Assembly: GCA_029953675.1 (NCBI GenBank) | Contig: JAMWBK010000004.1 | Coordinates: 496,001 to 560,000, forward strand | Direction of reading: 5' to 3' | Source: Rhodosorus marinus CCMP1338 | Lineage: Eukaryota > Plantae > Rhodophyta | DNA: 64,000 nucleotides | Shown here: one piece after another, positions 1,615 to 50,181 of the stretch | Numbering within the stretch: position 1 is the stretch's first letter | Layout: every line of letters starts with the position of its first letter | Notes under the pieces: generated by a model | What the model was told of the DNA's origin: nothing | The model's database searches: none | The model's input: the letters and a program-made list of their open reading frames with translations, nothing else | Made by a program: the position numbers and the translations under genes

Positions 1615-3207
1615 ATGGGGACGGTACTGATCTTGATAGCCGTACTGGCATTGTATGTGAATCGCTGCCATGGGAGTGCGGGCGTACGAGATCGTGATTT
1701 GCTGTGGCCTGAGCAAGTGTTCTTTGAGTTCGACGAGACCATTGACTTCGTCGTTGGGGTCGTGGTGCACAAGGCGATACGGAAGTTTGAGTCGGCGACT
1801 TGCAGGGAGTTCATCTACGACACGGAAAAACTGAATCGCATAAAATTTGTTCTGGACAAGGACAGGTGCTTCCAGACCAAGGTTGGTTACCGTAGTAGGG
1901 TTCACAAAGTCTATATTCATCCAGAGTGCACCGAAGAAGAAGACAGAATCGGAACCTTCACCCACCAAGTCATTCACGAGCTTGGACATGCTCTTGGACT
2001 CTACGATGAGACAAGTAGACCCGATCGAGGAGGGCACGTAAGGGTTAGGAGGTACTATGTTCGGAACCGGGCCCTCGACAGTGCGTACTTTAAGAAGCTC
2101 TCTTGGGATGAGGTCGACAACCAGGGCGTTAACTTCGATTTCAAATCCGCCATGCACTATGGAGGTAGATTTTTATCCAAGAGCAGTTCAAAGAATACTA
2201 CAGAGCCTAAACGAGCGACAGACGAGTTCCTCCTGAGCGACGAGCTTAGCAACGGCGACGTCAATACATTGCAGAGGATGTATCGGTGCAAAATGGCAAA
2301 CGAAGCAAACAATTCAATCATGCTCATTAAACTCAAGCAAGGTCACAACTTCCCCCTGATGGATAGCAGACTTAAAGGGCAACCTAAGGAGGTTAGGAAC
2401 CCCGACTCCGTTGTCGTATTAGTGGCGTTTACATGGGAGGGCGCCCCAGCCCTTCGGGAAAGTTTTGTCATCACTGACGTGAGGGATCCGGACTGGCACT
2501 CCCACAGTATCAACTTCGGAGAAGGTCGATGGGCTTACTTTACTATGGAGGTTTTAGATCAGGATCCAGGAGGTGAAAGAGAGACAATCATCTATAGACA
2601 GACCTTCGTTCCTAGCGTCCGGTCAGCTGGGCCGATGATTCTCTGCAAGACTCCGGATTCCTGCGATCAGAGCCTCGAATTTGAGCTATTTTATAAGCTG
2701 CAGACGGACTATTGTCGTACTCATACCTGTGAGCACGATGGCGTCTGTCAGAACTTCTTGAGTGGGCCTCTATGTTGGTGCGAGCGAGGGTACAGAGGGG
2801 ATCGCTGCGAGCAGAACTGGGGAAGACTGGTCGTCGAAGTTTTAGAGGCAGACAACCTCCCTGATAAAGACCCATGGCGCAACATGTCGGACCCTTACGT
2901 CGTAGTGGTGGCAGTAGATCACTTTGGAGTGCCGAAAGCAGACAAAACGAGTGTAAAGGGGGGAACTGGCCATCCTATCTGGCAGGACGAAGAGATGGAC
3001 TTTTGGTACGGCAGCTGGAAATCGATGAAGCTGACGGTGAAGGACTCGGATGGCGGCTCAGGCGATGAAACTCTCCTCGGAACGTTTGAACGCCGACTAC
3101 CAGATGCGTGGAGCACTGCGTCCGGTATGCAGGAGCTGGTTCTTGATGACTGCGCGAACGGCAACTGTGATCGGTATCTGAAGATCAAGTATGGATTTTA
3201 CTATTGA
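1615..3207 (+). CDS. Secreted astacin-like (M12A) metalloprotease with C2-like, EGF and C2 domains (530 aa)
   Basis: The in-frame ATG at 1615 gives a signal peptide (MGTVLILIAVLALYVNRCHG). Zn motif HELGHALGLYDETSRPDR, Met-turn SAMHY, EGF CRTHTCEHDGVCQNFLSGPLCWCERGYRGDRC, and C2 with NLPDKD...SDPYV...KDSD. No introns. Confidence 0.88.
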   Translation: MGTVLILIAVLALYVNRCHGSAGVRDRDLLWPEQVFFEFDETIDFVVGVVVHKAIRKFESATCREFIYDTEKLNRIKFVLDKDRCFQTKVGYRSRVHKVYIHPECTEEEDRIGTFTHQVIHELGHALGLYDETSRPDRGGHVRVRRYYVRNRALDSAYFKKLSWDEVDNQGVNFDFKSAMHYGGRFLSKSSSKNTTEPKRATDEFLLSDELSNGDVNTLQRMYRCKMANEANNSIMLIKLKQGHNFPLMDSRLKGQPKEVRNPDSVVVLVAFTWEGAPALRESFVITDVRDPDWHSHSINFGEGRWAYFTMEVLDQDPGGERETIIYRQTFVPSVRSAGPMILCKTPDSCDQSLEFELFYKLQTDYCRTHTCEHDGVCQNFLSGPLCWCERGYRGDRCEQNWGRLVVEVLEADNLPDKDPWRNMSDPYVVVVAVDHFGVPKADKTSVKGGTGHPIWQDEEMDFWYGSWKSMKLTVKDSDGGSGDETLLGTFERRLPDAWSTASGMQELVLDDCANGNCDRYLKIKYGFYY

Positions 3208-3484
3208 GAAACCCAGAGGAGCAGCCCGTTCACCCTCTCGAACCGGCCCGCAAGGGGAACCTAGTCTTTCTTATCCTCAAATTAACTCTCAAATGCAAGC
3301 GACGAGGGTTACTGAGAAATCGTGGAATCTCAAGACACTGGGGATTATTTCTCAGAAGCGTAAGCTTTCTTCTTTCTGGCTTTCTACATAAACCAAACGA
3401 TAGTTGAAGCCTAGACCGATCATCTCGAGTGCCCCTGTCGATCTCGGAGATCACTCCCACCGCATTTACGTTGGGACATCTTGT

Positions 3485-4071
3485 TCACTTGGCCGGGCAA
3501 GTGAGTCCCACTATGCACTTTGCGACGCCTGAGGTGCTATTTACTTTGCACCTGTCCGGTTGGTTTCCTTGTGGAGTGACGAGGATGTATTCCCCCTTCA
3601 CCTTCACCTGAGTCCTGGAGACAAGGCACATGTCCTTTCCACAGCAACTCTTCGGTGATTCGATTTCATCCGCGCAGATCACGTACTTCCTCTCTGCCAG
3701 CTTCTCCGTGCTCTTGATGGTGTACTTGGCGTTCCCTCGAGGAACTTTACTGCACTTCCTGAAGACGCCAAGCCTCACCTTGGACTTGATATCACCAGGG
3801 AGTTCCACCTTCACTCGAAGACAAAACCTTCCCCTTCCAGTCCTCGTCGTAGTCGTACACAGGGATCCATAACTGTTCCCCTTGGAGTCTCTCAGCTTCT
3901 GACAGAAGTGCTCAAACTCCGCCCGACTGCCCTCATCGATCCCATCTCCACAACTATGAATCTCCCCTTCATGCCTTACTGACAAATACACCCCGCTACT
4001 GAGCAACCCCTTAGCACCAAAACACTCGATCCCAAAATACAAAAAAGTATAAAATAAATCAAAGACTTCAT
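3485..4071 (-). pseudogene. Secreted Cys-rich domain protein with a 1-nt frameshift near the 5' end (pseudogene or homopolymer error)
   Basis: ATG at 4071 encodes a signal peptide MKSLIYFILFCILGSSVLVLRGCSVAG in a different frame from ORF 3485..4042. One extra base, e.g. in the G4 run near 3990, would join them. The Cys pattern matches 37452..38003 and the N-terminal domain of 53362..55077. Confidence 0.65.
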
Positions 4072-4761
4072 TGCAATTTACGTCTCTCCCCGCACCCTTT
4101 GATCATACTCAATAAAATACAATTGCATAAAATTATACCCCCCCTTGTGAAGCTGGCACAATTGCTCCAGGAGTTCCGCCTTCTGCTTGGAGACCGACCG
4201 GCTTTCTCGAGATTCGCCCAAGTCCCCTTTTTTATATCCCATCTCGACCCTTGAACAATTATTCGAAAAACTATTTGAGCATCCGGTTTTCTACTTAAGA
4301 ACTCCCAATGTTCTATAGATACGTATTTTAGGCATAAAATAGAACCTATGTTTTTTATATATTGTTTAGTGGTATAATTATTGAGCTCCCGGGGTTGACG
4401 TCAGCTTCCCTTTTCTGCCCAAATTAGAAACCCATGACGAAATAGGAAAGATTTTAGTATTTGGGAAAAATTATATTCTAATAATAGGATTTTTTTTGCA
4501 CAACCGTTGTGAATATATCGAATTAGAGTTTTTAAGGCAGTATCACCGTAGACGACGAAGCACTGGTTTGGGCATTCACCTGAAGGGGCTTGGAATTCAC
4601 CGTCCGAATAATGGTATGAAATTTTCACTTTACAGTCGAAGAAGCTAAAGGAGTAGTATACGGTATACAACTACTCCTGTTCTTGTCTATACTCTTCTAC
4701 AATCCACAGCTTACGAGCTTCTTGTGTTTGTACAGATCTACATAATCTTAGTTATAGTTGC

Positions 4762-6282
4762 TTAGGCGGCGACGTACACGGGAGCAGCCGTTGGCGCATA
4801 TGTAGGGGCCACTGTTTCGTACGCCGTCTCGTGCTCAGTAGGGTACTCGGTGGCGTCCTCAGTTGGGTACTCGGTAGGGTACTCGGTGGCGTCCTCAGTT
4901 GGGTACTCGGTGGCGTCCTCAGTTGGGTACTCGGTGGCGTCCTCAGTTGGGTACTCGGTGGAGTCCTCAGTTGGGTACTCGGTAGGGTACTCGGTGGGGT
5001 ACTCGGTGGGGTACTCGGTGGGGTACGCGGTGGGGTACGCGGTGGGGTACGCGGTGGGGTACGCGGTGGGGTACTCGGTGGGGTACGCGGTGGGGTACGC
5101 GGTGGGGTACGCGGTGGGGTACTCGGTGGGGTACTCGGTGGGGTACTCGGTGGGCTCCTGAGACGGGTACGGTGTCTCCTTGTGGTCGCACGGCTTCTCC
5201 GAGACAGTCTCATAAGGGGTAGCGGTCTCATAGGCAGTCTCGTACGGGGTCGGAGCCTCAGTCCCATACGGAGTCTCAAAGGGGGTCTCGTATGGAGTCG
5301 CTGTGTGGCTGCAAGGGGTCTCATAAGCGGTCTCGTACGGGGTGGCAGTCTCAGTCTCGTACGGAGTCTCATAGGGGGTCTCGTATGGAGTCGCTGTGTG
5401 GCTGCAAGGGGTCTCATAAGCGGTCTCGTACGGGGTGGCAGTCTCAGTCTCGTACGGAGTCTCATAGGGGGTCTCGTATGGAGTCGCTGTGTGGCTGCAA
5501 GGGGTCTCATAAGCGGTCTCGTACGGGGTGGCAGTCTCAGTCTCGTACGGAGTCTCATAGGGGGTCTCGTATGGAGTCGCTGTGTGGCTGCAAGGGGTCT
5601 CATAAGCGGTCTCGTATGGGGTCGGAGCCTCAGTCTCGTACGGGGTTCCAGTCTCATAAGCGGTCTCGTATGGGGTCGGAGCCTCAGTTTCGTACGGGGT
5701 TCCAGTTTCATAAGCGGTCTCATACGGGGTCGGAGCCTCAGTTTCGTACGGGGTTCCAGTCGCATATTCAGTCTCAGACGGTGTCGGAGCCTCAGTCTCG
5801 TACGGAGTTCCAGTCTCATAGGCCGTCTCGTAAGGTGTCGGAGCATCAGTCTCGTACGGAGTTCCAGTCTCATAGGCCGTCTCATACGGGGTCGGAGCCT
5901 CTGTATAATACGGAGTTTCAGTTTCGTACGGGGTCCAGGTCTCGTAATCGGTCTCATACGGCGTTTCCGTGGGGATTTCTGTGTGATTGCAGGGAGGCGT
6001 CAACGTTGGGTAAGCTGTAGGCGTCGGCTCCTTGTCACACGGAGTGGGAGCGACCGAGTGGCATGGACCATCGGACTTGCACGGACTATCTCCCTCAACT
6101 TCGAGGTTATTGATGATCAAGTTGTCAACGTTCTTGATGACCAGGCTGTCAACGTGAACGTTCTCAATATGCACATCCCGCTCACCATCGATCTCGACCG
6201 GTCCAGTGTATTCCGCCGGCACAGACAGGGCCGCGCCAACGAGCGCGAACAGAACCAAAACTCCAGCAGTAACCTTCATCAT
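4762..6282 (-). CDS. Secreted Pro/Thr/Tyr/Glu-rich repeat (mucin/extensin-like) protein
   Basis: Signal peptide MMKVTAGVLVLFALVGAALS, followed by tandem PYET, PTEY/PTAY and PTEDATEY repeats. This is the only frame with a signal peptide and non-repetitive ends. Confidence 0.82.
   Translation of the reverse strand: MMKVTAGVLVLFALVGAALSVPAEYTGPVEIDGERDVHIENVHVDSLVIKNVDNLIINNLEVEGDSPCKSDGPCHSVAPTPCDKEPTPTAYPTLTPPCNHTEIPTETPYETDYETWTPYETETPYYTEAPTPYETAYETGTPYETDAPTPYETAYETGTPYETEAPTPSETEYATGTPYETEAPTPYETAYETGTPYETEAPTPYETAYETGTPYETEAPTPYETAYETPCSHTATPYETPYETPYETETATPYETAYETPCSHTATPYETPYETPYETETATPYETAYETPCSHTATPYETPYETPYETETATPYETAYETPCSHTATPYETPFETPYGTEAPTPYETAYETATPYETVSEKPCDHKETPYPSQEPTEYPTEYPTEYPTAYPTAYPTAYPTEYPTAYPTAYPTAYPTAYPTEYPTEYPTEYPTEYPTEDSTEYPTEDATEYPTEDATEYPTEDATEYPTEYPTEDATEYPTEHETAYETVAPTYAPTAAPVYVAA
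4835..5960. repeat. Coding minisatellites: 12-bp, 24-bp, 54-bp and 93-bp units
   Basis: gctgcaagggg recurs at 5308, 5401, 5494 and 5587 (93-bp period). ggtggggtactc/ggtggggtacgc 12-mers run from about 4975 to 5150. Confidence 0.95.
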
Positions 6283-9200
6283 GTGCTGTCTTTCAAAACT
6301 CAATAAGTTCACTAGTACTCAATGTATTCTCTTCTCGGCTTCTCTTCTGATAATTTCTAATCCCGGTCTCCAATCCGCTCAGAGTGAAAACCTGATCCTA
6401 TTTATAACTTATTCATCAACCAAGGCGCTCGCTCTTTAGACGAACCTCGTATTCAAACAAAAAGTTGTGAAATTACACGAAATTTCCCTCCCTGACGTCC
6501 TAAACCTGCACTAGGACGATCACAACTCAACTGCTAAAATTGGCCAAGGTGCTGACAAGCCCATTGATCAGGCTATTCTCCCTCCCCAAAATTGCCCTAT
6601 GAAAAATACATTAAAAAACAATATCCCCATAAAAGTACCAAAATACAATAAAACAAATCAAGTGTTTCTAAACTTATTAACCATGCGTCTTTCTCCATTG
6701 GTCAATAGATTACTTTGCCGAATTCTATTTCGCCAGCTTACTGCTGACACCTTGAATTCAAAACATAATTGGTTATCACAATAATTGAATAATGATTTAA
6801 AATGATCTATGCCTTAATTATTGGGACTATTGGGAGATATGTATTGGTTGAGAGCAAGGTCGGCGGTTTTCCTTGAATGGCGGGCGTGGATAGTGTTGTG
6901 GCGGTGGGGCTCGCTTGGGGCCGTTTTTGTGTGATAGTCGTTCAGAAAGTGAAGGCCTTAGGTGGTAGATTTTCTTGATGAGAGAACAAGAATACTGAAT
7001 TTGAATGAGTCAATAGTGTGGCGACGGGGCTTTACTTCCTTACATGGATGACAGTGGGAGAGACTATAGATGGCAAAAAAAGCTGGGGAGGGGGGAATGG
7101 GGCGGGGATTGGGCTTTTTTTTTTCTACTATTGCAAGCGGTGCTGTCATTAGTTGAGGAACTGGGCATTCCGCTGGGGCCCCATGGATGAATTCTTGTAT
7201 TTGGAAGGAAGGGGCTGTTTGCCTCCGGCTAGAAGGCGAGTGGCAAGCATTTCGGACGTCTGCTTAGTTCTGGTCGTGATGTGAGAGGTGTTGCATGCAA
7301 TTCGTTAAGGGAATTATTGAATGAGCGCAGAGTTTTCTTATTCATCGGGATGGAAGAAAAGTGTCGTTTCCAGGGAGCTGTGAGCGTGCGTTTGAATGAT
7401 TGATTCCCTTGTGCGATGGCACTTGCGGACGTCGTCTGCCTCTGGATAAGTGGTTCCAGCAACTCCAGTCCTACTTCGGTTCTCCTTTGCGGATGGTAAG
7501 CAAAAAGTACATAAAAATAAATTCTATTTTATACAAGATGGAATCACATCCTTGATCGGGGAGCCACAAGTCCATCAGTGTATGCCGATCCCTATCCCGT
7601 TTGCTGACAAGAATCGCCCGAGACCAGGAAGTTATCAGTGGAATTTAGTGGGTAACTGCACACATGCTTAGAAAAATAATCGTAACCCAGCCTCTTCTGG
7701 CGTCTCCCTGAAACCATATTGCGCTAAGTACTCAATTTACCTCTTCTCCACCCAGTTTCAACTCGAGCCTAAGTACTCCCCCAAAACGGGGGCCAATTGC
7801 CCCACTCCAAGAACAATGTTCCCGAGCCAGACTTGAATTCATGAAGCAAACTTTCCCTACAGTCAAATTACTGTGATCAAAACGCGTCAATGCGCATCCT
7901 CTTCGCCAACCGCGAAGCTGCCACAACGTCGACGTTCCATTTTTGGGGAAACTGGCCCAGAAAATTCACGAAACCGGCACATTCATCGTACGATGCTTAC
8001 TATTTTACTGTATTAACAATATTAATATCATTTAAAAAAATTTATTAGTCAAATAAACTATACAGTGTCCATTATTACGATTGAACCTTAGAGGACAGTC
8101 TGTCCATTCTGTCTTCACGAACTGACTGGAGATGGTGAGGCTTGTTGTGAGGATAGATGTGGACTGGTGTACGATCATAGACGTAAAGGATACCTCAAAA
8201 TCTTCTCCATGAATTCTAAGGACCCCAGGATGCTTCTTTTCCCCCCTTGCCTTGAGTGTCGCTCACTGATTTGAAAAGTGTTTTGTGTGCGCACAGCCGC
8301 CGTGGGCCACTGGGTTCTGGGATGGGCGCGAGAGGTGGATTTGGCCTTCATTACCGCGAGAGATTTGACGTTTCTATGTGAAATCCTTGCGGTAGGGCTT
8401 TTTGTAACGGGCGAATCCTCGGAAGAGCCTACTTTCCGTCTTGCTCCTACAGGCGACCCCTGGAGGGGCAAGACTCCGTGGAAGGTTACGCATCTTGATT
8501 TCGTGGCCCTCGTCTAGGCCGGAGAGCTTGCGAAACGGCTCGAACCAGCACCAGAATCTGTGTGTTCCAGGATTATCTAAAGGCGTTCTAGTAACATCTA
8601 TTAGAAGATAGCGCAGGCATATTTCCTTGCTAATGGACGTCTACACCTTTGTGAGACAGTTGCGAGAGGGCAGCGAAGTCTGCTGAAGTCCATACTGAAG
8701 TTAGTTCATTATTACCCGGAGCTGATGTTTTCTCTGAAAATTTCGTGTGTGGAGCCACACTGCATACAAATACTTTTCCACTGCACTTGTGCCTTTGGGT
8801 GACTTTTGAATGCTCCGCATGTGCCAGTTGAATCCTGGGAATTGTCCTTTTTGCAGTTAACGTTTCTGTTGGAAACAGGAATCTCGACACCGACCGCCGC
8901 ACACCGCCCGCGTTGTTGATGGGAGAACAAGCCATATGCGTTTCAACTAGTTTTCAGAAGTTTCCTGGGACTGAAAACTGTTGTTAATCAATCGAAAGGC
9001 CCCGGGGAAGTAGGAACAGCGGTGGGAGAAAAGAGGAGAAGATGGGAGAATGAAAGAACTGCGTAAGTTGACAAAAGAACAAAATTCCAAGAGTTCGGTA
9101 GGAAAATTGGTGGGTTGATGACGTATTCTTATCGGAAGAGTGAACACCAGTGCGGGAGTATACCCGTGGGCTCGAATACGACAGCTACGGTATTTGCTCA

Positions 9201-11950: not shown

Positions 11951-11959
11951 TTGCGGAAT

Positions 11960-20132: not shown

Positions 20133-20479
20133 CGGAAAGTCTCCTGACTGCGCCACTTGGGTGTACACTCCACCGTAATCCTTCTGACTATACCTACGCG
20201 GAATGCCTGTCCGAACGCTGCGCCCAGCGATTCGGTCTCCTTAGGCACCGTAATTTACATCTTCGCGGCTGCCGCGGTCGTCATGAGGTTCACCTGCGCT
20301 CCGCAGTCCACGATCGCATTGAACTTGACGCCGCCTACTTCTGCCGCGAAGATGCAAATTACGGTGCCTAAGGAGACCGAATCGCTGGGTGCAGCGTTCT
20401 GACAGGCATTCCGCGTAGGTATAGTCATAAGGATTACGGTGGAGTGTACACCCAAGTGGCGCAGTCCGGAGACGTTCCG
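20133..20479. repeat. 139-bp inverted repeat with a 69-bp spacer inside the gypsy element
   Basis: 20133..20271 is the reverse complement of 20341..20479, with 7 mismatches counted by eye. Confidence 0.92.
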
Positions 20480-20914
20480 GCGGGGGGGATGTTGGCGTAT
20501 CCTTGTCAGTTTCACCGCCAGTTCTACATGCTGGTTGTGGCTCGCGAATCGCGTTCGCAGGGCAACTTGCAACGCTGCCCACGTTACCCGTTGTGTCACG
20601 GGAAGGGTGCGGTACCATTCGGTAACGGTTTTTGCAAGCCCTCGAACCGCGATGAAAAAAAAAAGCAAGTCACTGTCCTCCTCGAGGATATAAACGGCCT
20701 TCAGGTGCTCGAGCTCGCTTATGAATGTCTCGACGTCTGAAGTACCGTCGAAAGTCGGGGACTCAGATTTCTTTGGTAGTCGTCCCGATCGAGCTCCTTG
20801 CTGTTGTTGTAGCTGTTGCTGTTCCTGCACAAGCTGCTCCGTCATCCGCTGTTGTTGCTCTAGTAGTTGAGTAACCGCGGGCATCCACGCACCTGGAGGA
20901 GGATCGGGTTCCAT
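20480..20914 (-). pseudogene. Retrotransposon gag, truncated
   Basis: PTFDGTSDVETFISELE...AKTVTEWY...VTWAALQVALRTRF, typical of the retrotransposon gag domain. It is interrupted by the inverted duplication. Confidence 0.8.
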
Positions 20915-31000: not shown

Positions 31001-31208
31001 CACGGAAAAGGCAGCTCCATGTTTGAACCTGGGCGCGTGGCACAAATCGCCGTGTGGGAACAGGGCAGTGTGTAAGGCGCGTCCACTGCCTGCCTCCTTC
31101 CGTGATGTCGTCGACGAAGACGAAACACCGCCTGATCCAGTCTTGACGATCCGAGAAGAACAGAGGCTCGTCGCGGCGTCGTTTGATTCCCCTACGTCTG
31201 CTCGGCAT
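28068..31208 (-). CDS. ORF2: reverse transcriptase, zinc knuckle and restriction-like endonuclease (1046 aa, intact)
   Basis: SPGPSGLR, RPIGVPEVLRK, DLENAFN, GVQQGDPLGP and IHDD; CTSC...HHC and RRHD; RPDIV...LDVTVVSP...K. The GVQQGDPLGP and PIGVPE signatures indicate the CRE clade. Confidence 0.93.
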   Translation of the reverse strand: MPSRRRGIKRRRDEPLFFSDRQDWIRRCFVFVDDITEGGRQWTRLTHCPVPTRRFVPRAQVQTWSCLFRAALELSTDSTAPTTASLLLVGLPGLVLGHSALDVGIQVSHVLEGEFSTVWSALEDKASMLSHTTAPQGAEAVRRKHLGRHKRALKLAHLGRLSDAARSLQASEMAPFTAAMWRQLQALFPNPAEGDLPDEIAHALQSLLALNTETLKRRWDSRKAADEGLMSIVARLPQGKSPGPSGLRAEHLQGATQQTQVALIRVLRQLATAPEKFSPALTRALRRSRLLPFAKPNKGSEPQEHPGVRPIGVPEVLRKVATQWTLHAVMDRVRELLVPLQLGIGVSGGCERSLHAIQAHLSCAPDSVVLRLDLENAFNRIDRRLAKQLVDEHLPELAPVYRLGYGSDNADSPTLCGWRSSPGQNETDTARLTLQATTGVQQGDPLGPVLHALSLAPFLRALRAKFPNETIVAIHDDITIVGSLQAVKASLAWAKTVLPSLGARLQLGKCTVYARTLTTTRVVNHEIPGVQVTRDGVTIHSIPIGSREYIEQECRGLQNKHEKLFEEIAKLPQPELMTQIALFRFCAETRLDYVLRCLAYEFGRNLAREADAMTRYHLEILFGELATTAVEDDEYAELISDQIALPCRWGGLGFATRKRVQPIAFYSSWRNTFRNNEDEWPYLTELEREVTAERSPDTYEPMDQRWSTAQLADQICASSRAIQRRLGPETPPRILALTTLQQPRETSLRSAPGETAAWNNGSIQQTLSREAHHCAFQKLVTNPRISPENRARIRSAAGSGSGVWLREIPTPTPKKLSAVEMQVNVRQLLGLPIPGLRTTEKCTSCRSKHGRTGVQRFHHCPTSTGLWQRRHDEICRELARWLRRWNFMDVEQEPEGYFENYGPRPDIVARHPRTKQRYALDVTVVSPLQGKYLRRSQDDSRYAARAAEKWKIAHYKESMVIEKPDDKFIPIAIETFGRTGQMAQEFLRDSCKHLLHRSDELRDVRSQINRQLWRGNAEIALGALRVDQLENPLVPVFSFERSMRPR

Positions 31209-33840: not shown

Positions 33841-36800
33841 GTATGGCTTTACTGGACTTTACTGGACTTTACTAGCATAGCCTGAAGCGCTACGCAAGGC
33901 GTGAAGATGAACTAATAACTAGGGAGGGAAGTATGCAACCCCAGGCGCCGATGGCGCGCCTCGGAAAGCATGTGGCTGGAATATCGCCAAAGGGAGACAC
34001 TTAAACGCCTCAAGAGCGCCAAATATTCAGTAGGATGCTCAGCAAAACATTTCCGCAACCACACTAAACCCGACTTATCCACGTGACCAAAGCTTTCCAC
34101 AATGAATGGCTGGAACCGGTGAGAGCGACCCTCAGCGCAAGGCAGACTGGCCATGCTCTCAGCATACCGTCGTTCCTTAACTCTTCGAAGGGCTGAAGCC
34201 GCGGCCCCCCGGCGGCGGGCGGCTGCGGTGAGGTGGGCGCTAGCCACGGAGCAGGTAATCGCAAGGTCCACATATGTTGAGCGTCTGGCAGCAGCGTCGG
34301 AGACGAGGAGATCGGCTATACAACGGGGCGGTGCAGAGTCCGAGATTGATCTGGGCAGTTCCGACTCAACCTCAACCGTATGCCCTATCCGAGTCAAAAA
34401 TTCGCTGAGGATGTACTTGAGGCGAGTGTGACGCCTCGTACGGAGACCTCTCAACAGTCCGCAGGAACCCAGGAAGTGGTAGCCACAAGCGTCAATCCGA
34501 CTCTCACATCCCTGACAGAAAGACGGCCGATTAGAGTGCCACGGAGCCTGTGGCAAACCGAGATATATCCGTGCGGCAGAACGGAACTGGAAAGCATCGA
34601 GCCGATGACTCAATGACGACGGTAGAGTGGTTAACCACAAGTGCGAGAGACGGCCTCCCATGCCGAGGAGACGAGCGGCAGTGGTAGGCGGCGTGAGAGG
34701 AGAATTGAGCATGACTGTGTGAGCGGCACTGTGTTGGCCCCAGGTGAGGCTATGTTGAATCACATCAGTGCGGGAGCTCCACAATCGGCTCAAACCCGGG
34801 TAGTCTGCAACAGGTGACCCGGGGCTAGCCTCTCCGTCATCCGCAAGAACTCGGTCGAGGGGACAATCCTCAATCGCTTCAGCTCGTCCCCATAACAGCT
34901 CCTTCCAGGAACGAAAGCGGGACCGATTTGCGTCCGGCACGGCGTTGCACCTCCTGAACGCGTGTTGTTGAAGACCATCATAAATTGTCAAAAGCGGGGG
35001 CGGCAGGGTCACTGGATCCTCGTTGGTCAAAGCTCGAACCAAGAGGCAGGCACTTCGCATCTGGAAGGTCACCAACGTTCGCAGCGCGGTAGCCCAGGAG
35101 GCAACCGCCGCTGGCGAGCATATCAGCCCACGGTCTGCGACGCCGAATCCCCCGAATCGCAACGGTAGAGCGATCTGTTCACGAATCAAGTCCCTATCGG
35201 GAGCAGCTTTAAGATCGAGGGGCTCATCCAAGAGCGTTCCCCAGTGTTGCAGGGTCATCTCGTCGGTTTTAGCCGCGATCCACGAGCCCCAAGCTGGAGG
35301 CAGGCTGCGCAACCAGTAGTTGAGTCTGGGACCGGCACAAAAGCGGGAAAGCAAGCAGGCCGATTGCAGCATGCTGTCGGGTAGGTGCTCAATGGCGTCG
35401 GTGAGTTGCTTGTGCCGTGCCAAAACTCGCTCGCAGGATGCTTGGACAAAGTTGTCAGTCCCCAATCCGACGCCGTGGTGTTCGAACCCTTCACGTTCGC
35501 TGATTAGTCGCAGAGTGGGAGGCAGAGAGGCCAGCGACACGTCCCTCGGGGGGAGAAAGCGACATTTTTCTGTTTCCGAAGTCAAACCGACGCGACGTGC
35601 AATCGCTTCGATCTCGGTCAGCCCCCTAGCCAGGGTGTCAGGGGTGCCCAGCAATGTTACGTCATCGTGGTACGCGCAGATTCGAAGATCCGAGACCTCA
35701 GTCGAGAGACGTAAAAGTACGAGCTGTAGGGCACAGGCATGAAGAAGAGGTCCGCAAGGGTCGCCTTGTTGGACGCCAGTATGTGCTTGAAAAACAGTGC
35801 CCTCCGTTGTCAAGTAGGGGAGGCTCTCCCCTCCGTAAATACCCGATAGAAACGGCCACGCCTCCGGAAACACCCGTCGGAGCACCTCTAGCGCATGTGT
35901 CCGCGACACGCTGTTGAATGCGTTCCGGAAATCAACCACCAAGACTCCCCACTCCGGCCTACTGGCCCGTTCTAGCTCGATCCCATGGGTGATCAGTTCG
36001 CAACCCCCAAAAAATCCCACCCCTACTTGCAAGGGCGGCATAAAAGCTGTGACTCGCTGGCGAAGGCGCTGGCATAGCCACCTCCCGGCTAACTTCCGTA
36101 GGCTCTCCACCATCCCGATCAGCCGGAGACGCGAGTGGGCCGGCTGGTGGTCAGGTTTCGTGAGCAAGCAAAGCTGTGCCTGCCGGAGATGTTCCCATGG
36201 CGCAGACGCACCCGATACGCCCTGGAACAACTTGTAAAGGATCCTCAGAAGCGCGCTCTGGCCAGGCTGGCTCAGGGCCTGCAATAGCTCTGTTCTTAGT
36301 CCGGAGGGTCCGGGACAGCGTCCCCGACGCGAGGTACGAAGCAAATCCTCCAGGTCAGACTCACTGAGCGTCAGATCGATGCGAAACCTGGCCAACTCCG
36401 GACGGTCCAAGAATACCTCGAATTCAGGGGACAAGTCCACGTCGGACTCAGGGAACAAAGACGACACCGTCTGGGCGAGACTATCATCGTAGGGGAGGAC
36501 AGGCGCCTGGCCCTCCAAAACCCGCGCCGCTCGACTTAAATCGCCCACTGCTACCAATTTCTGTACTCGAGCCGGCACGGGCGACACTGTGCCATGCCGA
36601 GTCCGACGGGCGGATGGTGCTGGCGATGCCAAATAGCTGCGCTGTAGTACTTCGAAGTCTCCCTTCAAGAACAGGGCCAGTCGGTCTCGTACTCGCCATC
36701 TGCGCTCCGATGTGTGAATGGGGGCCAGAATCAGGCGCGGCATGACCCCCAGAAAAACCCAAATGACTGTGTCCCGAATGTTACGAGCCCGAATGTTACG

Positions 36801-37085
36801 AGCCAGGCTCGTGAAGATGAAATCGAGAATGGTTCCAGCTACTAGAAGGTCTCGACAAGGGAGGACGACTGGGGGAATGCCTCCACGGAGGGGAAGCGAG
36901 CCTCCTTCCAAAGAAATCCACCGCCGGAGCCAACTCCGAAAACGCGTACGCCAAATGCCCCAGTCTCCGCCCTCCTTCAGGACATAAGACTGTAGATCCA
37001 TAGGCTGCGACCTCGCAGCCGTGCCTGGAGCGCTAATCGTGCTTCTCCCCCTTAGACCCGGGGGAGTCGGTCCTCGCTCTCTTAC
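33841..37085 (-). mobile_element. Full-length single-ORF CRE-like non-LTR retrotransposon (family A, A1)
   Basis: Intact 1029-aa ORF, a short structured leader, and a 3' tail with 10-bp repeats (ctttactgga x2.7 on the plus strand). The 5' boundary is approximate. Confidence 0.9.
33912..37001 (-). CDS. RT, CCHC and restriction-like endonuclease protein (1029 aa, intact)
   Basis: CPGPSGLR, DFRNAFN, GVQQGDPCGP and YHDD; CQGC...H...C and RRH; IADLLV...YVDLAIT...KERRY. Confidence 0.93.
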   Translation of the reverse strand: MDLQSYVLKEGGDWGIWRTRFRSWLRRWISLEGGSLPLRGGIPPVVLPCRDLLVAGTILDFIFTSLARNIRARNIRDTVIWVFLGVMPRLILAPIHTSERRWRVRDRLALFLKGDFEVLQRSYLASPAPSARRTRHGTVSPVPARVQKLVAVGDLSRAARVLEGQAPVLPYDDSLAQTVSSLFPESDVDLSPEFEVFLDRPELARFRIDLTLSESDLEDLLRTSRRGRCPGPSGLRTELLQALSQPGQSALLRILYKLFQGVSGASAPWEHLRQAQLCLLTKPDHQPAHSRLRLIGMVESLRKLAGRWLCQRLRQRVTAFMPPLQVGVGFFGGCELITHGIELERASRPEWGVLVVDFRNAFNSVSRTHALEVLRRVFPEAWPFLSGIYGGESLPYLTTEGTVFQAHTGVQQGDPCGPLLHACALQLVLLRLSTEVSDLRICAYHDDVTLLGTPDTLARGLTEIEAIARRVGLTSETEKCRFLPPRDVSLASLPPTLRLISEREGFEHHGVGLGTDNFVQASCERVLARHKQLTDAIEHLPDSMLQSACLLSRFCAGPRLNYWLRSLPPAWGSWIAAKTDEMTLQHWGTLLDEPLDLKAAPDRDLIREQIALPLRFGGFGVADRGLICSPAAVASWATALRTLVTFQMRSACLLVRALTNEDPVTLPPPLLTIYDGLQQHAFRRCNAVPDANRSRFRSWKELLWGRAEAIEDCPLDRVLADDGEASPGSPVADYPGLSRLWSSRTDVIQHSLTWGQHSAAHTVMLNSPLTPPTTAARLLGMGGRLSHLWLTTLPSSLSHRLDAFQFRSAARIYLGLPQAPWHSNRPSFCQGCESRIDACGYHFLGSCGLLRGLRTRRHTRLKYILSEFLTRIGHTVEVESELPRSISDSAPPRCIADLLVSDAAARRSTYVDLAITCSVASAHLTAAARRRGAAASALRRVKERRYAESMASLPCAEGRSHRFQPFIVESFGHVDKSGLVWLRKCFAEHPTEYLALLRRLSVSLWRYSSHMLSEARHRRLGLHTSLPSY

Positions 37086-40782: not shown

Positions 40783-40785
<3 letters not shown>

Positions 40786-42026: not shown

Positions 42027-42149
42027 CCCTCCGGTGGTAGTCTAGACTTGACTTGTGAAGGCGTAAGGAGCAGGGACGTCGCGAGAAAAAAGCGTTGAAG
42101 ATCAGTTTGTAAGGGAAAAGGGTGTGTTCCAACCCTATTGAAAGAAACC

Positions 42150-42710
42150 ATGAAGCTTCTCGTTGTAGCTGCTTACCTGGTTGCACTGGGCGCGATGCGC
42201 ACGTCCAGTGTGAATGTTTCTGTTGAGTCTGCGTATGATCCAGGTGCTCTGTCGGAGTCAAAAGTGTTTGAAGCGTACAATATGCCCTATGATGTAGAGC
42301 AAAAGCCATCGCAAATCGAAGAATATGACGACGATGACGAGGAAAGGCCACGGGACCCGTTGGTACCTGAAGAAACTTTTGATGATGGACTGAGCGGCGG
42401 GGAAATAGCTGGTATTTTCATAGGCGTCATCGGAGGTGTAGCATTGATTGCCGTGGGCTCTTGGTTCTTGTTCGTGCGGAGGAAGAAGAAGAGGAGGAGG
42501 AGGACGAGGAAGACCAACGCCGATGGCGTGTCCGAGTCCGGGTCTGAGTATGAATATCCCTCGGATAGCGAAGATGCTGAGGACCCGTTGGAAAGGGCGA
42601 TGGCTCAAGATGAGAAAGCTGATTTCTCCACTTTCGATGAGCCAGAGAATCTAGTGAAGTGTGGCCTGCCGTGTGTCAGACCACAAGAGGTAGCTGAAGA
42701 TGAGATCTGA
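42150..42710 (+). CDS. Type I single-pass membrane protein with acidic ectodomain and tail (186 aa)
   Basis: Signal peptide MKLLVVAAYLVALGA, TM segment GLSGGEIAGIFIGVIGGVALIAVGSWFLFV, stop-transfer RRKKKRRRR and an acidic tail. Confidence 0.8.
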   Translation: MKLLVVAAYLVALGAMRTSSVNVSVESAYDPGALSESKVFEAYNMPYDVEQKPSQIEEYDDDDEERPRDPLVPEETFDDGLSGGEIAGIFIGVIGGVALIAVGSWFLFVRRKKKRRRRTRKTNADGVSESGSEYEYPSDSEDAEDPLERAMAQDEKADFSTFDEPENLVKCGLPCVRPQEVAEDEI

Positions 42711-44271: not shown

Positions 44272-46293
44272 ATGATGAAGGTGATTTTGTTGTACCCTTT
44301 GGTGTGTTTGGTTGTGCTGAGGATCTGTAGTGCTGCTGGTGTGAGGGGGTCACACAAAAAGTGGGATGCAGACAAACCGATTCGATACAGTTTTGACAAG
44401 GACGTGATTCCGTCGGCGAAGGATAGTATTGTTGCCGCGTTGGAGCGGTTCGAGAGAGATACTTGCCTGGAGTTTAAGGAGGGCAAGTCGAGCGGGAACC
44501 ACATCTTTTTCACGTCGAAGAAATCTGAATGCTACTCCGCGAGGGTTGGATTCCGAGGTGGACGGCACATTGTTTCCGTCCACCCATACTGTTACGGAGG
44601 GTATCCCCTTCTGTCACAGGCGCTATATCAACTTGGCAAGGTACTTGGTATGGTCGAGACGCACAGCCGGCCCGACAGGGACGATCATATTAGCGTGAAC
44701 AAATCCAACGTCCTCGTGAGGTTTCGCTCACTGTTCTCCAAGGTGCGGTGGTCGGACTATGCGGATGAGGGTGTAGGCTTTGACCGCAACTCAATCATGA
44801 TCTTCGAACAGCGCTTTCTCTCCAGAAACGGTAAGAAGACCTTCGCGATGAAAAACAGCGCTGTCTCACGTCCAGCCGCCAGCAAATGGCTCAGCAAATC
44901 CGATGTCAAGCTTCTCAACCGAATGTACGATTGCCCAGCAAAGGCAGAGAAGGGCAGGTTCATCTTCCGCTTGAAGCGAGCCAGGAACTGGCCCGCCAGG
45001 GCTCGGGTGAAGGTGACGGCGGTTGACTCCAAGGGCAAGAGGCACGTCAAGCAGATGACCGTAAAGAGGGATCCCAACACGCCTCGCTTCTTCGGCTACA
45101 AATTTGACTTTGGGAAAGGGAGATTTCAGTATTTCCGAGTCGCCGTTCTCAACAACGACATTGCCAACCCGCAGCAGATCTTCCTGGAGCAGCTCTATAC
45201 TATCTCAGAGGGTGATACGTACTTCCTCCTGTGTCAAGCTCCTGGAAGCTGCAACACGAACCTCAGGTTCAAGACGGAATTCAAGCCGCTGCCCGGCGGC
45301 GGTAGCCGTTGTGATCCCAATCCGTGCAAAAACGGTGGCGAGTGTAAAGTAGCAGGTGGCTCATCATACACCTGCAAGTGTCTCGCAGGTTTCTACCGGC
45401 AAAACTGTGAGCTGATGTGGGGGGAGCTCATTGTCACTGCAGTTCGCGGTCAGAACCTAGACCATGACGATTCGGATGATGTACTTGACCGACGGGTGAA
45501 CATACCGGATCCCTACGTGCAGGTCACCGCAACAAACTTCAACAACACCGAAGTCGTTCGGAAGAGCCGAGTTGAGAGGAACAACGCCAATCCGGACTGG
45601 AAGGGCGAGAGACTCTACCTCGGTATGAGCTCCTGGCAAGAGATAGAGGTGAAGGTGCTTGACTTTGAATCAGACCCAGGCAACGTCCATGAGCACCTCG
45701 TGCCAAGAAGAAGGTTTCATCGTACTCCCAGCTACGGCGAGTCCACGATCCTCCTGTGCGGTTCTAACCCGGGCTGCACGCGATTCGTAGAGATCAAACT
45801 CTCTTTCAAGCCAGTTGCACCTCCGCCTATCTGCCCAGTTGGTTTCACCGGCTTCAACTGCGACATACCGTTCGGAGTCCTGGACGTGAAAATCTTCAAA
45901 GGCGTCGGTCTACCTAATGATAGTGGGAACCCCCTTAATCCCTTCGTTGTGATCACCGCGAAGAACGAGCGGTGCCTTCAGTTCTCAAAGGAAACGTCGA
46001 CAAAGTTCGGAACCACAAATCCCGTCTGGGATGAATCGTTCCAGTTCGGGAAGGAAACATGGACAAGTGTCGCGATCAATGTCATGGCTGAGGATGTGCT
46101 TGGAGACGGTGACATACAAGTCCTTCCCACCCAGGAGTTCTTCATCAAACCCGTTCCCGAATTCAAAATCGTCTTCAGGAGGAGGGTCTGCATATCACCT
46201 CGGAACTGTACACAGTATGTGGAGATTGAGATATCCTACAAAGAGAGACTTCAGCCCGACGTAGTCTCCGACCAGCTATATGCTTGTGCTTGA
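44272..46293 (+). CDS. Secreted astacin-like pseudo-protease with C2-EGF-C2-(short Cys link)-C2 (673 aa)
   Basis: Signal peptide and astacin fold with the zinc motif replaced by YQLGKVLGMVE while RPDRD is kept. EGF CDPNPCKNGGEC...CLAGFYRQNC. Three C2-like domains. Confidence 0.88.
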   Translation: MMKVILLYPLVCLVVLRICSAAGVRGSHKKWDADKPIRYSFDKDVIPSAKDSIVAALERFERDTCLEFKEGKSSGNHIFFTSKKSECYSARVGFRGGRHIVSVHPYCYGGYPLLSQALYQLGKVLGMVETHSRPDRDDHISVNKSNVLVRFRSLFSKVRWSDYADEGVGFDRNSIMIFEQRFLSRNGKKTFAMKNSAVSRPAASKWLSKSDVKLLNRMYDCPAKAEKGRFIFRLKRARNWPARARVKVTAVDSKGKRHVKQMTVKRDPNTPRFFGYKFDFGKGRFQYFRVAVLNNDIANPQQIFLEQLYTISEGDTYFLLCQAPGSCNTNLRFKTEFKPLPGGGSRCDPNPCKNGGECKVAGGSSYTCKCLAGFYRQNCELMWGELIVTAVRGQNLDHDDSDDVLDRRVNIPDPYVQVTATNFNNTEVVRKSRVERNNANPDWKGERLYLGMSSWQEIEVKVLDFESDPGNVHEHLVPRRRFHRTPSYGESTILLCGSNPGCTRFVEIKLSFKPVAPPPICPVGFTGFNCDIPFGVLDVKIFKGVGLPNDSGNPLNPFVVITAKNERCLQFSKETSTKFGTTNPVWDESFQFGKETWTSVAINVMAEDVLGDGDIQVLPTQEFFIKPVPEFKIVFRRRVCISPRNCTQYVEIEISYKERLQPDVVSDQLYACA

Positions 46294-46730: not shown

Positions 46731-48123
46731 TGACAACTACGCTATAAAGGGACAGATGTCCATTGCATAAGGAACTCTGCCTCGCATTGACGCTACTGCT
46801 AGGCCCAAAAAGGTATCAGTCGAAACTGGTCTCGGTGGAGAGAGTGGCCTGCCTCGGAAGTATTTCACTGATCACCCCTTGGCCGTACCTCGCGCGTTTG
46901 CAACTATTCAACTCTAGTTTTGTGTTGCTTCTCCGGTGAGATTCTTGTATGTGATATCTGTCATCGTGTTGGCTCACGTTCCCTAGACGGCTGTAGGTTT
47001 CCAAGCCTGGCCCCTGTTGGTTGAGGATTTGATGACGAGAATCAACCATGGCCGTTGAGGTGCGTAATGGCCGTAATTATGAGAGGATAAACCGTTTCAA
47101 ATACATGCTTAACGAAACTTTGAAGTCATCTCATGACCCAGTGCCTTCTCAAGCGATACCTACCCGGCTACGATGTCAACCCTGCCATGGAAACACGTCG
47201 GGCAACGGTATTATCGAATAAACATCCAAAAACAATATCAAACATTCAAACCATTGGATAGTAAATTAGATAAATGCATATTTTAGAAATATGTTCTCTA
47301 TTAATTGGATAAACTCATTGCATTGAGCCAATAATACTTCTCAGTGAATGGGTAGTGATTAAAAATGATTATAGGTGGAATACTCTTCATAAAACAAATA
47401 AAATTAAACCTATTTCAAAGATCTCCAATAGAAAATTGCGTTGACTAATATATTCCGGAGAACACATTTTACGATTAATTGGATTGGTTGTAAGTGATAT
47501 TTATTGGATATGATTTATTGAGGTTTTGGAGAAGCCCTAAAGGGCTCCTCGGTGAGTGAAGCGGGTTTGGTTTAGAGCGGCGTGGCTGTGGTCGGTCCAA
47601 GGTGTTTGTAGGGAAGATAGATATCTCACATGTCTTAACATTGGCATTGTATTGTTTTAGATGGCTTTTGAATGTTCCTGTTAGCCAATCTGGGCTTTTT
47701 GTGGTGTTTGCCCTGCCATGGCAGCCCGGGCGCCGGCGTACCCGGGTCAATGAAAAAACCGCACAGACTTCCGCAGCTGAGCGTTTTACAGATGATGCAC
47801 ACTTCAATTTTCAGTTCGGTGAGCATGGATGTATTTCTACGCTGGTCAGTTTGAAGAAAGGGCTGCTAGCTGCTGTCAGCTAATCCCCCCGGGCTCTTGG
47901 AAAACACTCAGCCGGACATAGTGGATTGCCACGGGACTACTTGTCTCGATATGGGAAGGACGGTCATCGGATTCTAACTAAACTAATGTATCGCGCCAGC
48001 TGTTTAACTAACTGCGTTCAGACAGTATATAGCCAGACAGTGGCCGACGGGCATACCGGCCTCAACCCGGAGTCCCCTCTGGTTATATCAACAGACAACG
48101 CTTGTCTTCTGATTAAAACAAAG

Positions 48124-50181
48124 ATGAAGTCAAGAAGCTCTTTGGTGATAATTGCCTCCGTCGCGGTTGTTTTTTGCGCTGGTGTGTGCTCAGGAGCAGT
48201 GGTACGAAGCGAATCGAAGAAATGGGACGTGTCCAAACCAATTCCATACCGGTTTTCGAACTCTGTGGACGCCGTGACCAAGTTCTATGTAAGGGAAATA
48301 TTGACGCAGTTCAACTACACCTGTCTAAAGTTTGAAGAGGACCATGAGGGAGTCAAGAAGGACCATGTGTACTTTATCCAGGATAGAAAGCAGTGTTTCC
48401 AAGCGAAAGTGGGTTTCCGCGGGGGTCGTCACATCGTTTCAGCGAGCGCGGTATGTCCGGGTGGGTACTCAACTACCACTCACGCGCTTCATGAGCTGGG
48501 ACACGTTCTGGGAATGTACAACTCAGTCAATCGTCCTGATCGGGACGACTTTGTTGATGTGAAGAGCAAGAACGTCATCAAGGCGTTTCGTAGCCATTTT
48601 TACAAAGAGTCGTGGGAAGACGTCGCAAACGAAGGCCTCAACTTCCCCTTCCGTTCCATCATGACGATGGATGAATACTGGCTCTCAAAAAATGGTAAGA
48701 CAACGGTGTTTCCTAAGAAATCTGAGGACACGCTCGAGTCGAGGTCGAACTTAAGCGCGTCCGATGCGCGTCTGCTGAACCTTGCATACAACTGTCCGAG
48801 TCCAGCTGCTTCTGGAAAGTTCATCTTGAAGCTTAAGCGAGGTAGAGGCCTCCCGAAGAAGGCCTATGTCGTAGTAACGGTTTATCAACAGGACGGAGTG
48901 ATCCGCAGCAAGGTCTTGAAAGTGAAGTCGTCAGAGCCCTCACAGAGGTACTTTGGCTACAAGCTGAGCTTTGGAGTTCAGACGTTCAAGTACTGCCGGG
49001 TGAAGGTCGTGAAAGGGACTGGTCGCAACGCCAAGGCTATCTTTCACGAGCAAGTGTTCCATTTTCCGCAAAATGCAGACAGTTACCACAAACTATGTGA
49101 GGCTCCGGGCGACTGCGACAAGCACCTTCGATTCAAGATCGAGTTCCACGAAGAGGACGATGGCCTCCCTCCCGGCGATCAAGATGGCAGATGTGCTAGG
49201 AGCCCGTGTCAGAACGGCGGCGTATGCGAGAACACACCCCTTGGCGTTCATTCTTACCACTGCCATTGCCCACCGGGATTCTTCCGGGACGTCTGTGAGC
49301 TTCCTTTTGGCGAGCTGCTGGTGGAGGTAGTCAAGGGCCACAACCTCCCCAATCTGGATGAGTCGCAGCCTGGTGAGGGACCGGCGTCGGATCCGTTCGT
49401 GTCCGTCTTCGCCCAGAACGTGAACGGAACTGTCGTCAAGAGAGTCAGCAAAATTGTGAGAGATAGCAACAACCCGAACTGGGGCCGTCAGCTACTAAAG
49501 TTTGACTACAGCTCCTGGCTTGCCTTTACGCTCGATGTCTATGACTATGATGAGGAGGGCCCGCCCAGACTCCTCCTTCCGAGACGCTCGTTCGAGATCA
49601 CTCCGACGGCGAGGAACGGAGGGAAGAAAATCTACAAGGCCTGTGGAAAGGATCCAGAGTGCTCGAGTTACGTTGAATTCAGAGTCTCCTACGAGGAGAT
49701 TCCGTTCGAACCCCCTCTCTGTCCTGTCGGGTACATGGGTTACAACTGCACCGTGCCCTATGGACAGCTTGATATCAGAGTAAAGGGGGGACGTAACCTC
49801 ACCAACCTGGATGCTTCGAATGATGCACTATCAGACCCCTTTGTGCAGATCACCGCCGACGGTTCCTGTTTGACTGCGTCTGTAAAAGAGAAGACTACGC
49901 ACAAACCCGACACAGCGAATCCAGTATGGGACGAGACGCTCAGATTCGGAACCGACAATTTCGATAAGATCAAGGTGAAGGTTTTGGATGCCAACAAGGG
50001 GGGTAAGACTGATGTAATCATACCGAAAAAGACGTTCAAAATCTTTCCTCAATCTCCAGACGCACGGACGAGGCTCCTCAGAGTGTGCAAATATGACAAC
50101 TGTGCTGAGTATGTAGACCTCGAGGTCACGTACATGGGGCTCCAACAGCCCGATATCTTCCCTTTACGGGCATGCCAGTAG
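48124..50181 (+). CDS. Secreted astacin-like protein with C2-EGF-C2-(short Cys link)-C2 (685 aa)
   Basis: The in-frame ATG at 48124 gives a signal peptide (MKSRSSLVIIASVAVVFCAGVCSG). Motif HELGHVLGMYNSVNRPDRD, EGF CARSPCQNGGVC...CPPGFFRDVC, and C2 domains with SDPFV. Confidence 0.88.
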   Translation: MKSRSSLVIIASVAVVFCAGVCSGAVVRSESKKWDVSKPIPYRFSNSVDAVTKFYVREILTQFNYTCLKFEEDHEGVKKDHVYFIQDRKQCFQAKVGFRGGRHIVSASAVCPGGYSTTTHALHELGHVLGMYNSVNRPDRDDFVDVKSKNVIKAFRSHFYKESWEDVANEGLNFPFRSIMTMDEYWLSKNGKTTVFPKKSEDTLESRSNLSASDARLLNLAYNCPSPAASGKFILKLKRGRGLPKKAYVVVTVYQQDGVIRSKVLKVKSSEPSQRYFGYKLSFGVQTFKYCRVKVVKGTGRNAKAIFHEQVFHFPQNADSYHKLCEAPGDCDKHLRFKIEFHEEDDGLPPGDQDGRCARSPCQNGGVCENTPLGVHSYHCHCPPGFFRDVCELPFGELLVEVVKGHNLPNLDESQPGEGPASDPFVSVFAQNVNGTVVKRVSKIVRDSNNPNWGRQLLKFDYSSWLAFTLDVYDYDEEGPPRLLLPRRSFEITPTARNGGKKIYKACGKDPECSSYVEFRVSYEEIPFEPPLCPVGYMGYNCTVPYGQLDIRVKGGRNLTNLDASNDALSDPFVQITADGSCLTASVKEKTTHKPDTANPVWDETLRFGTDNFDKIKVKVLDANKGGKTDVIIPKKTFKIFPQSPDARTRLLRVCKYDNCAEYVDLEVTYMGLQQPDIFPLRACQ

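Follow-up and report, generated by a model that had tools for sequence, protein, structure and literature searches.

The window analysed here is a 64,000-nucleotide stretch of nuclear contig 4 (JAMWBK010000004.1, assembly GCA_029953675.1) of Rhodosorus marinus CCMP1338, a unicellular red alga, and it carries three genes, called p1, p2 and p3 below (P0005, P0004 and P0001, respectively), whose products contain an astacin-like protease domain with another residue in the place of the third histidine that binds zinc. The genome was assembled from Nanopore long reads, Illumina short reads having also been made, and gene prediction by BRAKER with RNA-seq gave 8392 genes with 24,821 introns (PMC10250338). 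All three genes, and the features described within them, lie on the forward strand. The first, p1 (1615..3207), is a single exon encoding 530 amino acids (aa), in which open reading frame (ORF) and Pfam analyses place a signal peptide followed by astacin-like, C2, EGF and C2 domains. The second, p2 (44272..46293), is also a single exon and encodes 673 aa, with a signal peptide, an apparently dead astacin-like domain and then C2, EGF, C2, EGF and C2 domains. The same order is found in p3 (48124..50181; 685 aa from the annotated ATG), a tandem neighbour of p2 located 1.8 kb downstream of it. The identity between p2 and p3 is 39%, and that of p1 to either of them is about 28%. An earlier note on this DNA had described three long and intact astacin-like ORFs, which is borne out by ORF calls, deposited gene models and full-profile Pfam matches: each frame is intact from its first ATG, the lengths equal those of the deposited models, and p1 is identical to its 530-aa model. 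A tblastn search with p1, p2 and p3 found no further astacin copy in the window.

In p1, p2 and p3 alike, the match to the Pfam Astacin family (PF01400) covers the full profile, positions 2-189 of 189; E-values run from 4e-31 to 7e-32 (5e-32 for p1) and scores are 109-112 bits against a cut-off of 22.5. The PDB matches of the three proteins include BMP1, TLL1, the meprins, astacin and Limulus LAST-MAM. The domain occupies 1678..2292 in p1 (aa 22-226, by Pfam and Foldseek), 44335-44937 in p2 (aa ~22-222) and 48196-48798 in p3 (aa 25-225). The fold model covers p1. An initial AlphaFold2 (AF2) model, built on a 9-sequence alignment, was weak in the C-terminal subdomain and was replaced by a model built on 49 sequences, with a mean predicted local distance difference test score (pLDDT) of 89.5 and values above 90 in the active-site helix, the glycine turn, the Met-turn region and the N-terminal segment. 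In Foldseek comparisons, the catalytic domain of this model matches mature BMP1 (3edg) with a TM score of 0.88 and a root-mean-square deviation of 2.5 Å, and astacin (1ast) with a TM score of 0.85.

The canonical HExxHxxGxxH motif is absent in all three paralogs, which present HExxHxxGxxD (p1), YQxxKxxGxxE (p2) and HExxHxxGxxN (p3). HMMER alignments to the solved BMP1, TLL1 and LAST-MAM place D131 of p1, E129 of p2 and N133 of p3 on the third zinc histidine, and SAMHY, SIMIF and SIMTM on SxMHY. The zinc-site motif of p1, HELGHALGLYDE (1975..2010), contains H121, E122, H125 and G128, followed by D131 (GAT, 2005-2007) at the third-histidine place and by the family-specific glutamate, E132; its Met-turn SAMHY (2146..2160), with M180 and Y182, is canonical. 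The p2 motif, YQLGKVLGMVET (44626..44661), has Y119, Q120 and K123 for H, E and H, E129 (GAG) for the third histidine and T130 for the family glutamate, and the Met-turn SIMIF (44791..44805) retains its methionine with tyrosine changed to phenylalanine. In p3, the motif HELGHVLGMYNS (48490..48525) retains H123, E124 and H127, with N133 (AAC) for the third histidine and S134 for the family glutamate; the Met-turn SIMTM (48655..48669) keeps methionine, and tyrosine is changed to methionine. The general-base residue thus differs by paralog (E122 in p1, E124 in p3, glutamine in p2), and all three have RPDR, which reads RPDRG in p1 and, in the other two, RPDRD. Counted over the catalytic positions, losses amount to one of six in p1, which keeps every other element (HExxH, G, D-E, RPDR and SAMHY), three of six in p3 and all five in p2. 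A nearby histidine as substitute ligand was considered and rejected: p3 has none, and p2 has a histidine two residues beyond the third-ligand position but lacks HExxH.

The translations and alignments confirm the central claim of the earlier note, that none of the three paralogs has the canonical third zinc histidine. The intervals it gave translate as it said (1975-2007 to HELGHALGLYD, 44626-44658 to YQLGKVLGMVE and 48490-48522 to HELGHVLGMYN), but they span just 11 residues of each motif. Its view that the third-ligand position is wholly lost in p2 has to be corrected, as the position is instead occupied by E129.

The window holds only part of the family. Cluster look-ups yielded three further CCMP1338 paralogs, all single-exon. 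Giving the zinc motif, the third ligand with the next residue, and the Met-turn, these are P0016 (KAJ8905601.1; HEVGH, D-E, SIMQY), which lies some 340 kb downstream on contig 4; P0009 (KAJ8904749.1, contig 5; HEIGH, N-E, SVMQY); and P0010 (KAJ8903135.1, contig 7; HETGR, D-L, SVMLY). In the same notation, p1 is HELGH, D-E, SAMHY; p3 is HELGH, N-S, SIMTM; and p2 is YQLGK, E-T, SIMIF. The third histidine is missing in all six paralogs of the CCMP1338 annotation, of which the three seen earlier, each of them non-canonical as was claimed, are half. A profile of p1-p3 searched against 1.84 billion representative proteins returned 183 matches below 1e-30, and residues were tallied over 185 near-complete astacin domains of the nearest relatives. 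The full canonical set is present in 150 of these 185 domains, and a third ligand other than histidine is found in six of six CCMP1338 paralogs versus six of the 179 others. These other cases occur only in an environmental clade that is without the catalytic glutamate and tyrosine (H[TIL]xGH ... SIMHL; P0019, P0063, P0120 and P0051).

Within R. marinus, only the transcriptomes of other strains yielded a histidine version (HEIGH, H-E, SIMHY in P0007 and P0169). P0007 is A0A7S3A5U5, an MMETSP transcript protein with the canonical third histidine; P0169 is A0A7S2ZTJ2, from a second data set that probably represents another strain, and is 78% identical to P0007. The P0169 cluster also includes two contigs, one from Logan, of transcript length, and one from JGI. 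Used as the query of a protein search, the canonical P0007 returned no CCMP1338 protein and, judged from the annotated proteins, CCMP1338 may be without a three-histidine astacin. The protein comparisons indicate that the six genes form a lineage-specific family in the CCMP1338 annotation. Scattered across contigs 4, 5 and 7, they are single-exon, in a genome with a mean of about 3 introns per gene; this fits an origin by retrocopy or transfer, or an old intron-poor family.

Could the missing histidines be an artefact, either Nanopore assembly errors or the neutral drift of p2 and p3 as pseudogenes? The assembly is indeed Nanopore-based, and p1-p3 are present in no second data set. Nanopore errors are chiefly indels, which would disrupt ORFs, and this counts against an artefact: the frames of 530-685 codons are unbroken and stay open at 27-39% identity. 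Base-calling error cannot account for the non-histidine codons, because they differ (GAT, GAG and AAC among p1-p3), because they occur at six loci on three contigs, and because the changes go with substitutions at the family glutamate and the tyrosine. Decay is opposed by the conservation of all cysteines and of RPDR at 27-43% identity. The identity of the catalytic domains among paralogs is 32-43%. No alignment shows a change at C63, C85 or C105 (p1 numbering), nor do the Rhodosorus paralogs vary at C225, which is at least 90% conserved in the 49-sequence set. The astacin disulfide cysteines (C42-C198 and C64-C84 in astacin numbering) are retained in all paralogs, along with the glycine turn, RPD-R and the serine and methionine of the Met-turn. 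We read the retained cysteines, RPDR and methionine, together with the open frames, as marks of constraint at the level of the fold and not of decay or assembly error. Synonymous divergence (dS) would be saturated at the distance of the paralog pairs. Assembly error and neutral decay, which the earlier note had named as what could overturn its reading, find no support in the varied codons, the intact frames and the conserved cysteines and RPDR, and we consider them extremely improbable.

A second departure from the astacins concerns latency. The core astacin architecture is a signal peptide, a prosegment and a catalytic domain, and in the activated enzyme the newly created N-terminus lies buried and binds the family-specific glutamate (PMC9848320, PMC9629494). 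In p1, A22 comes directly after the predicted signal peptide, MGTVLILIAVLALYVNRCHGS (1615..1677, aa 1-21, with the cleavage site presumed from the -3/-1 rule); the alignment sets A22 opposite residue 1 of mature BMP1, and W31 falls on W10. The same arrangement is seen in the Rhodosorus members, including the canonical P0007, where a hydrophobic leader runs directly into [A/S]-x-[V/L]-R-x5-W. In the family alignment, the astacin domain begins at residues 18-31 in all Rhodosorus members, versus residues 77-242 in many canonical environmental relatives, and the EGD prosegment motif is found in the consensus of nine canonical relatives only. These alignments show the whole Rhodosorus family to be without a propeptide. 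The proteins would be secreted and, as the leader abuts the position of the mature N-terminus, signal-peptidase cleavage would therefore produce the "activated" N-terminus that is otherwise exposed by propeptide removal, leaving no zymogen stage. The glutamate that receives the buried N-terminus is kept in p1, P0016 and P0009, and is lost in p2 and p3.

Downstream of the catalytic domain, p1 has a first C2-like beta-sandwich at 2311..2700 (aa ~233-362), recognised from AF2 strands and Foldseek and corresponding to Pfam C2 matches in relatives; an EGF-like domain at 2713..2808 (aa ~367-398), with six conserved cysteines in invariant columns and a Pfam EGF match; and a C-terminal C2 domain at 2821..3201 (aa 403-529; Pfam C2, E = 2.5e-11). 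Pfam C2 (PF00168) is detected in p1, p2 and p3, the latter two having an extra EGF-C2 module. Both beta-sandwiches of p1 match tandem-C2 structures in Foldseek (E-Syt2, BON1 and synaptotagmins). The first acidic loop of its C-terminal C2, LPDKD..SDPYV, aligns with synaptotagmin-1 in an alignment with C2A and C2B, and the DSDGGSGDE stretch (within VKDSDGGSGDE) was matched by eye to the place of the third Ca2+-binding loop. A secreted C2 domain of this kind would probably stay Ca2+-loaded in seawater. The Ca2+-ligand positions are intact in p1 and, in seawater with its plentiful Ca2+, the C2 domains probably tether these proteins to a membrane or an anionic surface.

Whether any of these proteins cleaves peptides depends on the metal site. 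In p1 this site would be complete, made up of H121, E122, H125, D131 for the third histidine, E132, M180 and Y182. HExxHxxGxxD is recognised as a motif that binds zinc, and snapalysin (M7) is counted as one of the Met-zincins (PMC3890501), in agreement with the earlier note, which had named this motif as a snapalysin-type variant. It is plausible, and we lean slightly towards the idea, that p1 is a metal-dependent endopeptidase with snapalysin-like His/His/Asp ligands on an astacin scaffold. The catalytic domains of p1, P0016 and P0009 are 36-39% identical (39% for p1 and P0016), and each of them retains H, E, H, the family glutamate, the methionine and the tyrosine. We infer that a working metal site is under selection in p1 and P0016, because this residue set is kept at 39% identity while the same positions change in p2, P0010 and p3.

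Several observations weigh against an active p1. Aspartate at the third-ligand position is also found in the dead relatives P0010, P0120 (HTLGH..D) and P0051 (YLIGQ..D), and it may be just a one-step mutational neighbour of histidine; the retention of HExxH could reflect a structural and not a catalytic metal. The active-site modelling proposed in the earlier note gave a confident p1 site (pLDDT above 90), but AF2 models carry no metals. The protein clusters of p1-p3 hold this assembly alone; word-indexed protein searches with p3 and with the family alignment, which returned essentially the query alone, found no orthologs of p1 or p3; and a scan of JGI metagenomes with p1 gave no match.

Another explanation is that the whole non-histidine family, p1 included, is non-catalytic. 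Its members would be secreted C2/EGF proteins for adhesion or binding, in which a fossil astacin fold serves as a ligand-binding module and HExxH persists, in some of them, structurally or by incomplete decay. The third histidine is missing in every one of the six paralogs, aspartate does occur in dead contexts (P0010, P0120, P0051), and a constitutively active secreted protease with no propeptide would be unregulated. Pseudo-astacins also recur, given that a second environmental clade of the same architecture has lost the catalytic glutamate and tyrosine, and pseudopeptidases that keep the Met-turn are well known among the M12 ADAMs (PMC11266112). On the other hand, p1, P0016 and P0009 keep, at 36-39% identity, the other five residues of catalysis or of the metal site, the general-base glutamate and the tyrosine among them, and the dead members show that catalytic positions are free to change. 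To our knowledge, neither the general-base glutamate nor the Met-turn tyrosine has a purely structural role, which we count against an entirely dead family. We regard such a family as the less probable outcome, with a chance that is far from negligible.

The remaining two genes are easier to place. All ligands and the general base are gone in p2, which is almost certainly a pseudoprotease and would be kept as a folded binding module. In p3, HExxH is retained, but asparagine, serine and methionine stand in place of the third histidine, the family glutamate and the tyrosine; on this residue pattern it is probably a pseudoprotease, or a very weak enzyme. One could argue that p3, as well as P0009, is active too, in a graded enzyme series in which the asparagine side-chain oxygen, or water together with two histidines, holds the metal: p3 keeps HExxH and the Met-turn methionine, and P0009 keeps HExxH, N-E and the tyrosine. 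This is unlikely, as p3 has lost the family-specific glutamate (to serine) and the tyrosine (to methionine) together, Tyr149 of astacin is important for transition-state binding (PMC3890501), and an Asn-ligated metzincin was not found in the literature searched. A role of p2 and p3 as decoys or regulators is speculation.

Considering all of this, the reading that we prefer is a secreted, C2-targeted and zymogen-free family in which p1 would be an Asp-ligated enzyme, p2 dead and p3 probably dead, and we give it, taken as a whole, about an even chance. The proposal of the earlier note, one Asp-ligated active enzyme beside two weak or dead pseudoproteases, therefore stands for p2 (YQxxK...E-T, SIMIF) and very probably for p3; it is less secure for p1, whose activity we only infer and whose aspartate is shared with dead relatives. 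Only tentatively do we suggest that p1 and P0016, and perhaps P0009, are the first natural astacin-fold endopeptidases with aspartate (or asparagine) as third ligand, zymogen-free and aimed at membranes by C2 domains, in a red alga whose annotation seems to be without a three-histidine astacin.

Compared with the astacins (M12A; BMP1/tolloid, meprins, crayfish astacin, LAST-MAM), the three paralogs share PF01400, both disulfides, the glycine turn, RPDR(D), the Met-turn methionine and, for p1, the fold; p1 also keeps the general-base glutamate, the family-specific glutamate and SxMHY, and an EGF module lies downstream in BMP1 as it does here. They differ in that the third ligand is aspartate, glutamate or asparagine and not histidine, and in that there is no prosegment or Asp-switch. 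By homology p1-p3 belong to the astacin family but, with the three-histidine motif and the prosegment absent, they fall outside the canonical definition of its metallopeptidases. Reviews place astacins in Holozoa and scattered other groups, "not in plants", without naming Rhodophyta, and the main text of the 2023 review mentions neither C2 fusions nor Rhodophyta (PMC9848320, PMC9629494).

The ligand set of p1 and P0016 (HExxHxxGxxD with a downstream methionine) is that of snapalysin (M7; PMC3890501), whereas the p1 domain is about 200 residues long, with the astacin C-terminal subdomain, the family glutamate and the tyrosine. A Pfam scan of p1-p3 (E <= 0.01) gave Astacin, C2 and EGF-type families only, with no M7 homology. 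As for p2, and probably p3, the closest parallel is with the M12 pseudopeptidases (ADAM2/7/11/18/22/23/29/32 and unc-71), which likewise have substituted ligands and/or base, a conserved Met-turn and fold, and EGF-type modules downstream (PMC11266112). In contrast to these, p2 and p3 fall in the astacin (M12A) branch rather than the adamalysin (M12B) one, lack both a prodomain and a disintegrin domain, and are C2-linked. The R. marinus MMETSP proteins A0A7S3A5U5 and A0A7S2ZTJ2 have the domain architecture, at 30-45% identity, and the missing propeptide in common with the CCMP1338 paralogs, but keep the histidine.

Recent reviews describe astacins as zymogen-regulated, with an invariant three-histidine site, and as essentially holozoan. 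The red-algal family departs from this picture by its third ligand, its missing latency peptide, its C2 fusion and its Archaeplastida host. Pseudoproteases are common in M12, and this is not a new kind of system; it is known here from sequence and a model. What it offers is a natural gradation: histidine in other strains, then Asp-Glu-Tyr, Asn-Glu-Tyr, Asn-Ser-Met and, last, fully dead members. Such a series could reveal how a metzincin site copes with a changed ligand and how duplication gives rise to pseudoproteases. The pattern is seen across the family and, with the propeptide lost, the question of activity can be tested directly.

Relatives with the same astacin-C2-EGF-C2 order, at 30-45% identity, are found in ENA and Logan assemblies of uncultured eukaryotes (e.g., L002, L003 and L006). 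They differ from the CCMP1338 genes in being mostly canonical (HEIGHAIGFWHEQSRPDRD ... SIMHY), many with 80-240 residues before the domain. The ENA contigs are long and gene-sparse, often with tandem arrays. The long-read contigs L006 (ERZ21788760 ctg99388l), L002 and L003 carry arrays of two to four astacin-C2 genes amid sparse gene calls, and look eukaryotic; an Rfam scan of the environmental astacin-C2 loci gave no match. A bacterial origin of the architecture was considered and rejected. The sole label in its favour, MCG8624890.1 ("MAG: M12 family metallopeptidase [Proteobacteria bacterium]", MAG standing for metagenome-assembled genome), lies on a 2.4-kb contig, and the same protein cluster is also found on a 978-kb contig that looks eukaryotic, with sparse genes and a tandem astacin-C2 array. 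The 2.4-kb contig is probably a mis-binned eukaryotic fragment. Among 185,579 bacterial and archaeal genomes, no astacin with C2 or EGF was found; the catalytic domain alone was matched, at 25-37% identity.

A second set of pseudo-astacins was noticed among the relatives (P0019, P0157, P0158, P0063, P0067, P0072, P0075, P0120, P0051, P0042, P0052 and P0081; e.g., L007 5188-6822). These have H[T/I/L]xGH, in which the catalytic glutamate is lost, and S[I/V/L/A]MH[L/Q], in which the tyrosine is lost. Several have C2 and/or EGF domains, several have asparagine or aspartate at the third ligand, and most are without a long N-terminal extension. From these motifs, the set looks like parallel pseudo-astacin evolution.

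Other genes of the window were also inspected. Beside p1, a 516-aa ORF on the reverse strand (4762-6312) has an internal signal-like leader, MMKVTAGVLVLFALVGAALS, and consists almost entirely of Thr/Pro/Tyr/Glu repeats (PYETAYET, EYPT); Tandem Repeats Finder (TRF) reports arrays at 4841-5922 with periods of 12, 93 and 54. Its composition suggests that the product is probably a secreted mucin-like or matrix protein. In a 571-aa protein (53362-55077, reverse strand), a leader and a Cys-rich N-terminal domain accompany 13 stretches of RTX calcium-binding nonapeptides (Pfam HemolysinCabind, E = 1e-53), an unusual find for a red alga, and a 185-aa ORF (3485-4042, reverse strand) has the same Cys-rich domain (BLASTP E = 7e-12). 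These Cys-rich ORFs lie on the opposite strand downstream of astacin paralogs, 0.3 kb after p1 and 3.2 kb after p3, a hint that a segment with a pair of astacin and Cys-rich genes was duplicated long ago.

Retroelements lie between p1 and the p2/p3 pair: two reverse-transcriptase ORFs (RVT_1) of about 1030 aa, at 28068-31208 and 33912-37001 on the reverse strand, are 28% identical and fall in a GC-rich block (0.55-0.58), and a gag/aspartic-protease-like ORF is found at 20255-20914, also on the reverse strand. On the forward strand, 1.5 kb upstream of p2, a 190-aa ORF (42138-42710) combines a signal peptide with an acidic ectodomain, a single transmembrane helix, a poly-basic RRKKKRRRR stop-transfer sequence and an acidic tail. 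Finally, a glutathione S-transferase-like ORF at 59583-60251, also on the forward strand, has weak Pfam matches to GST_N and GST_C_3.

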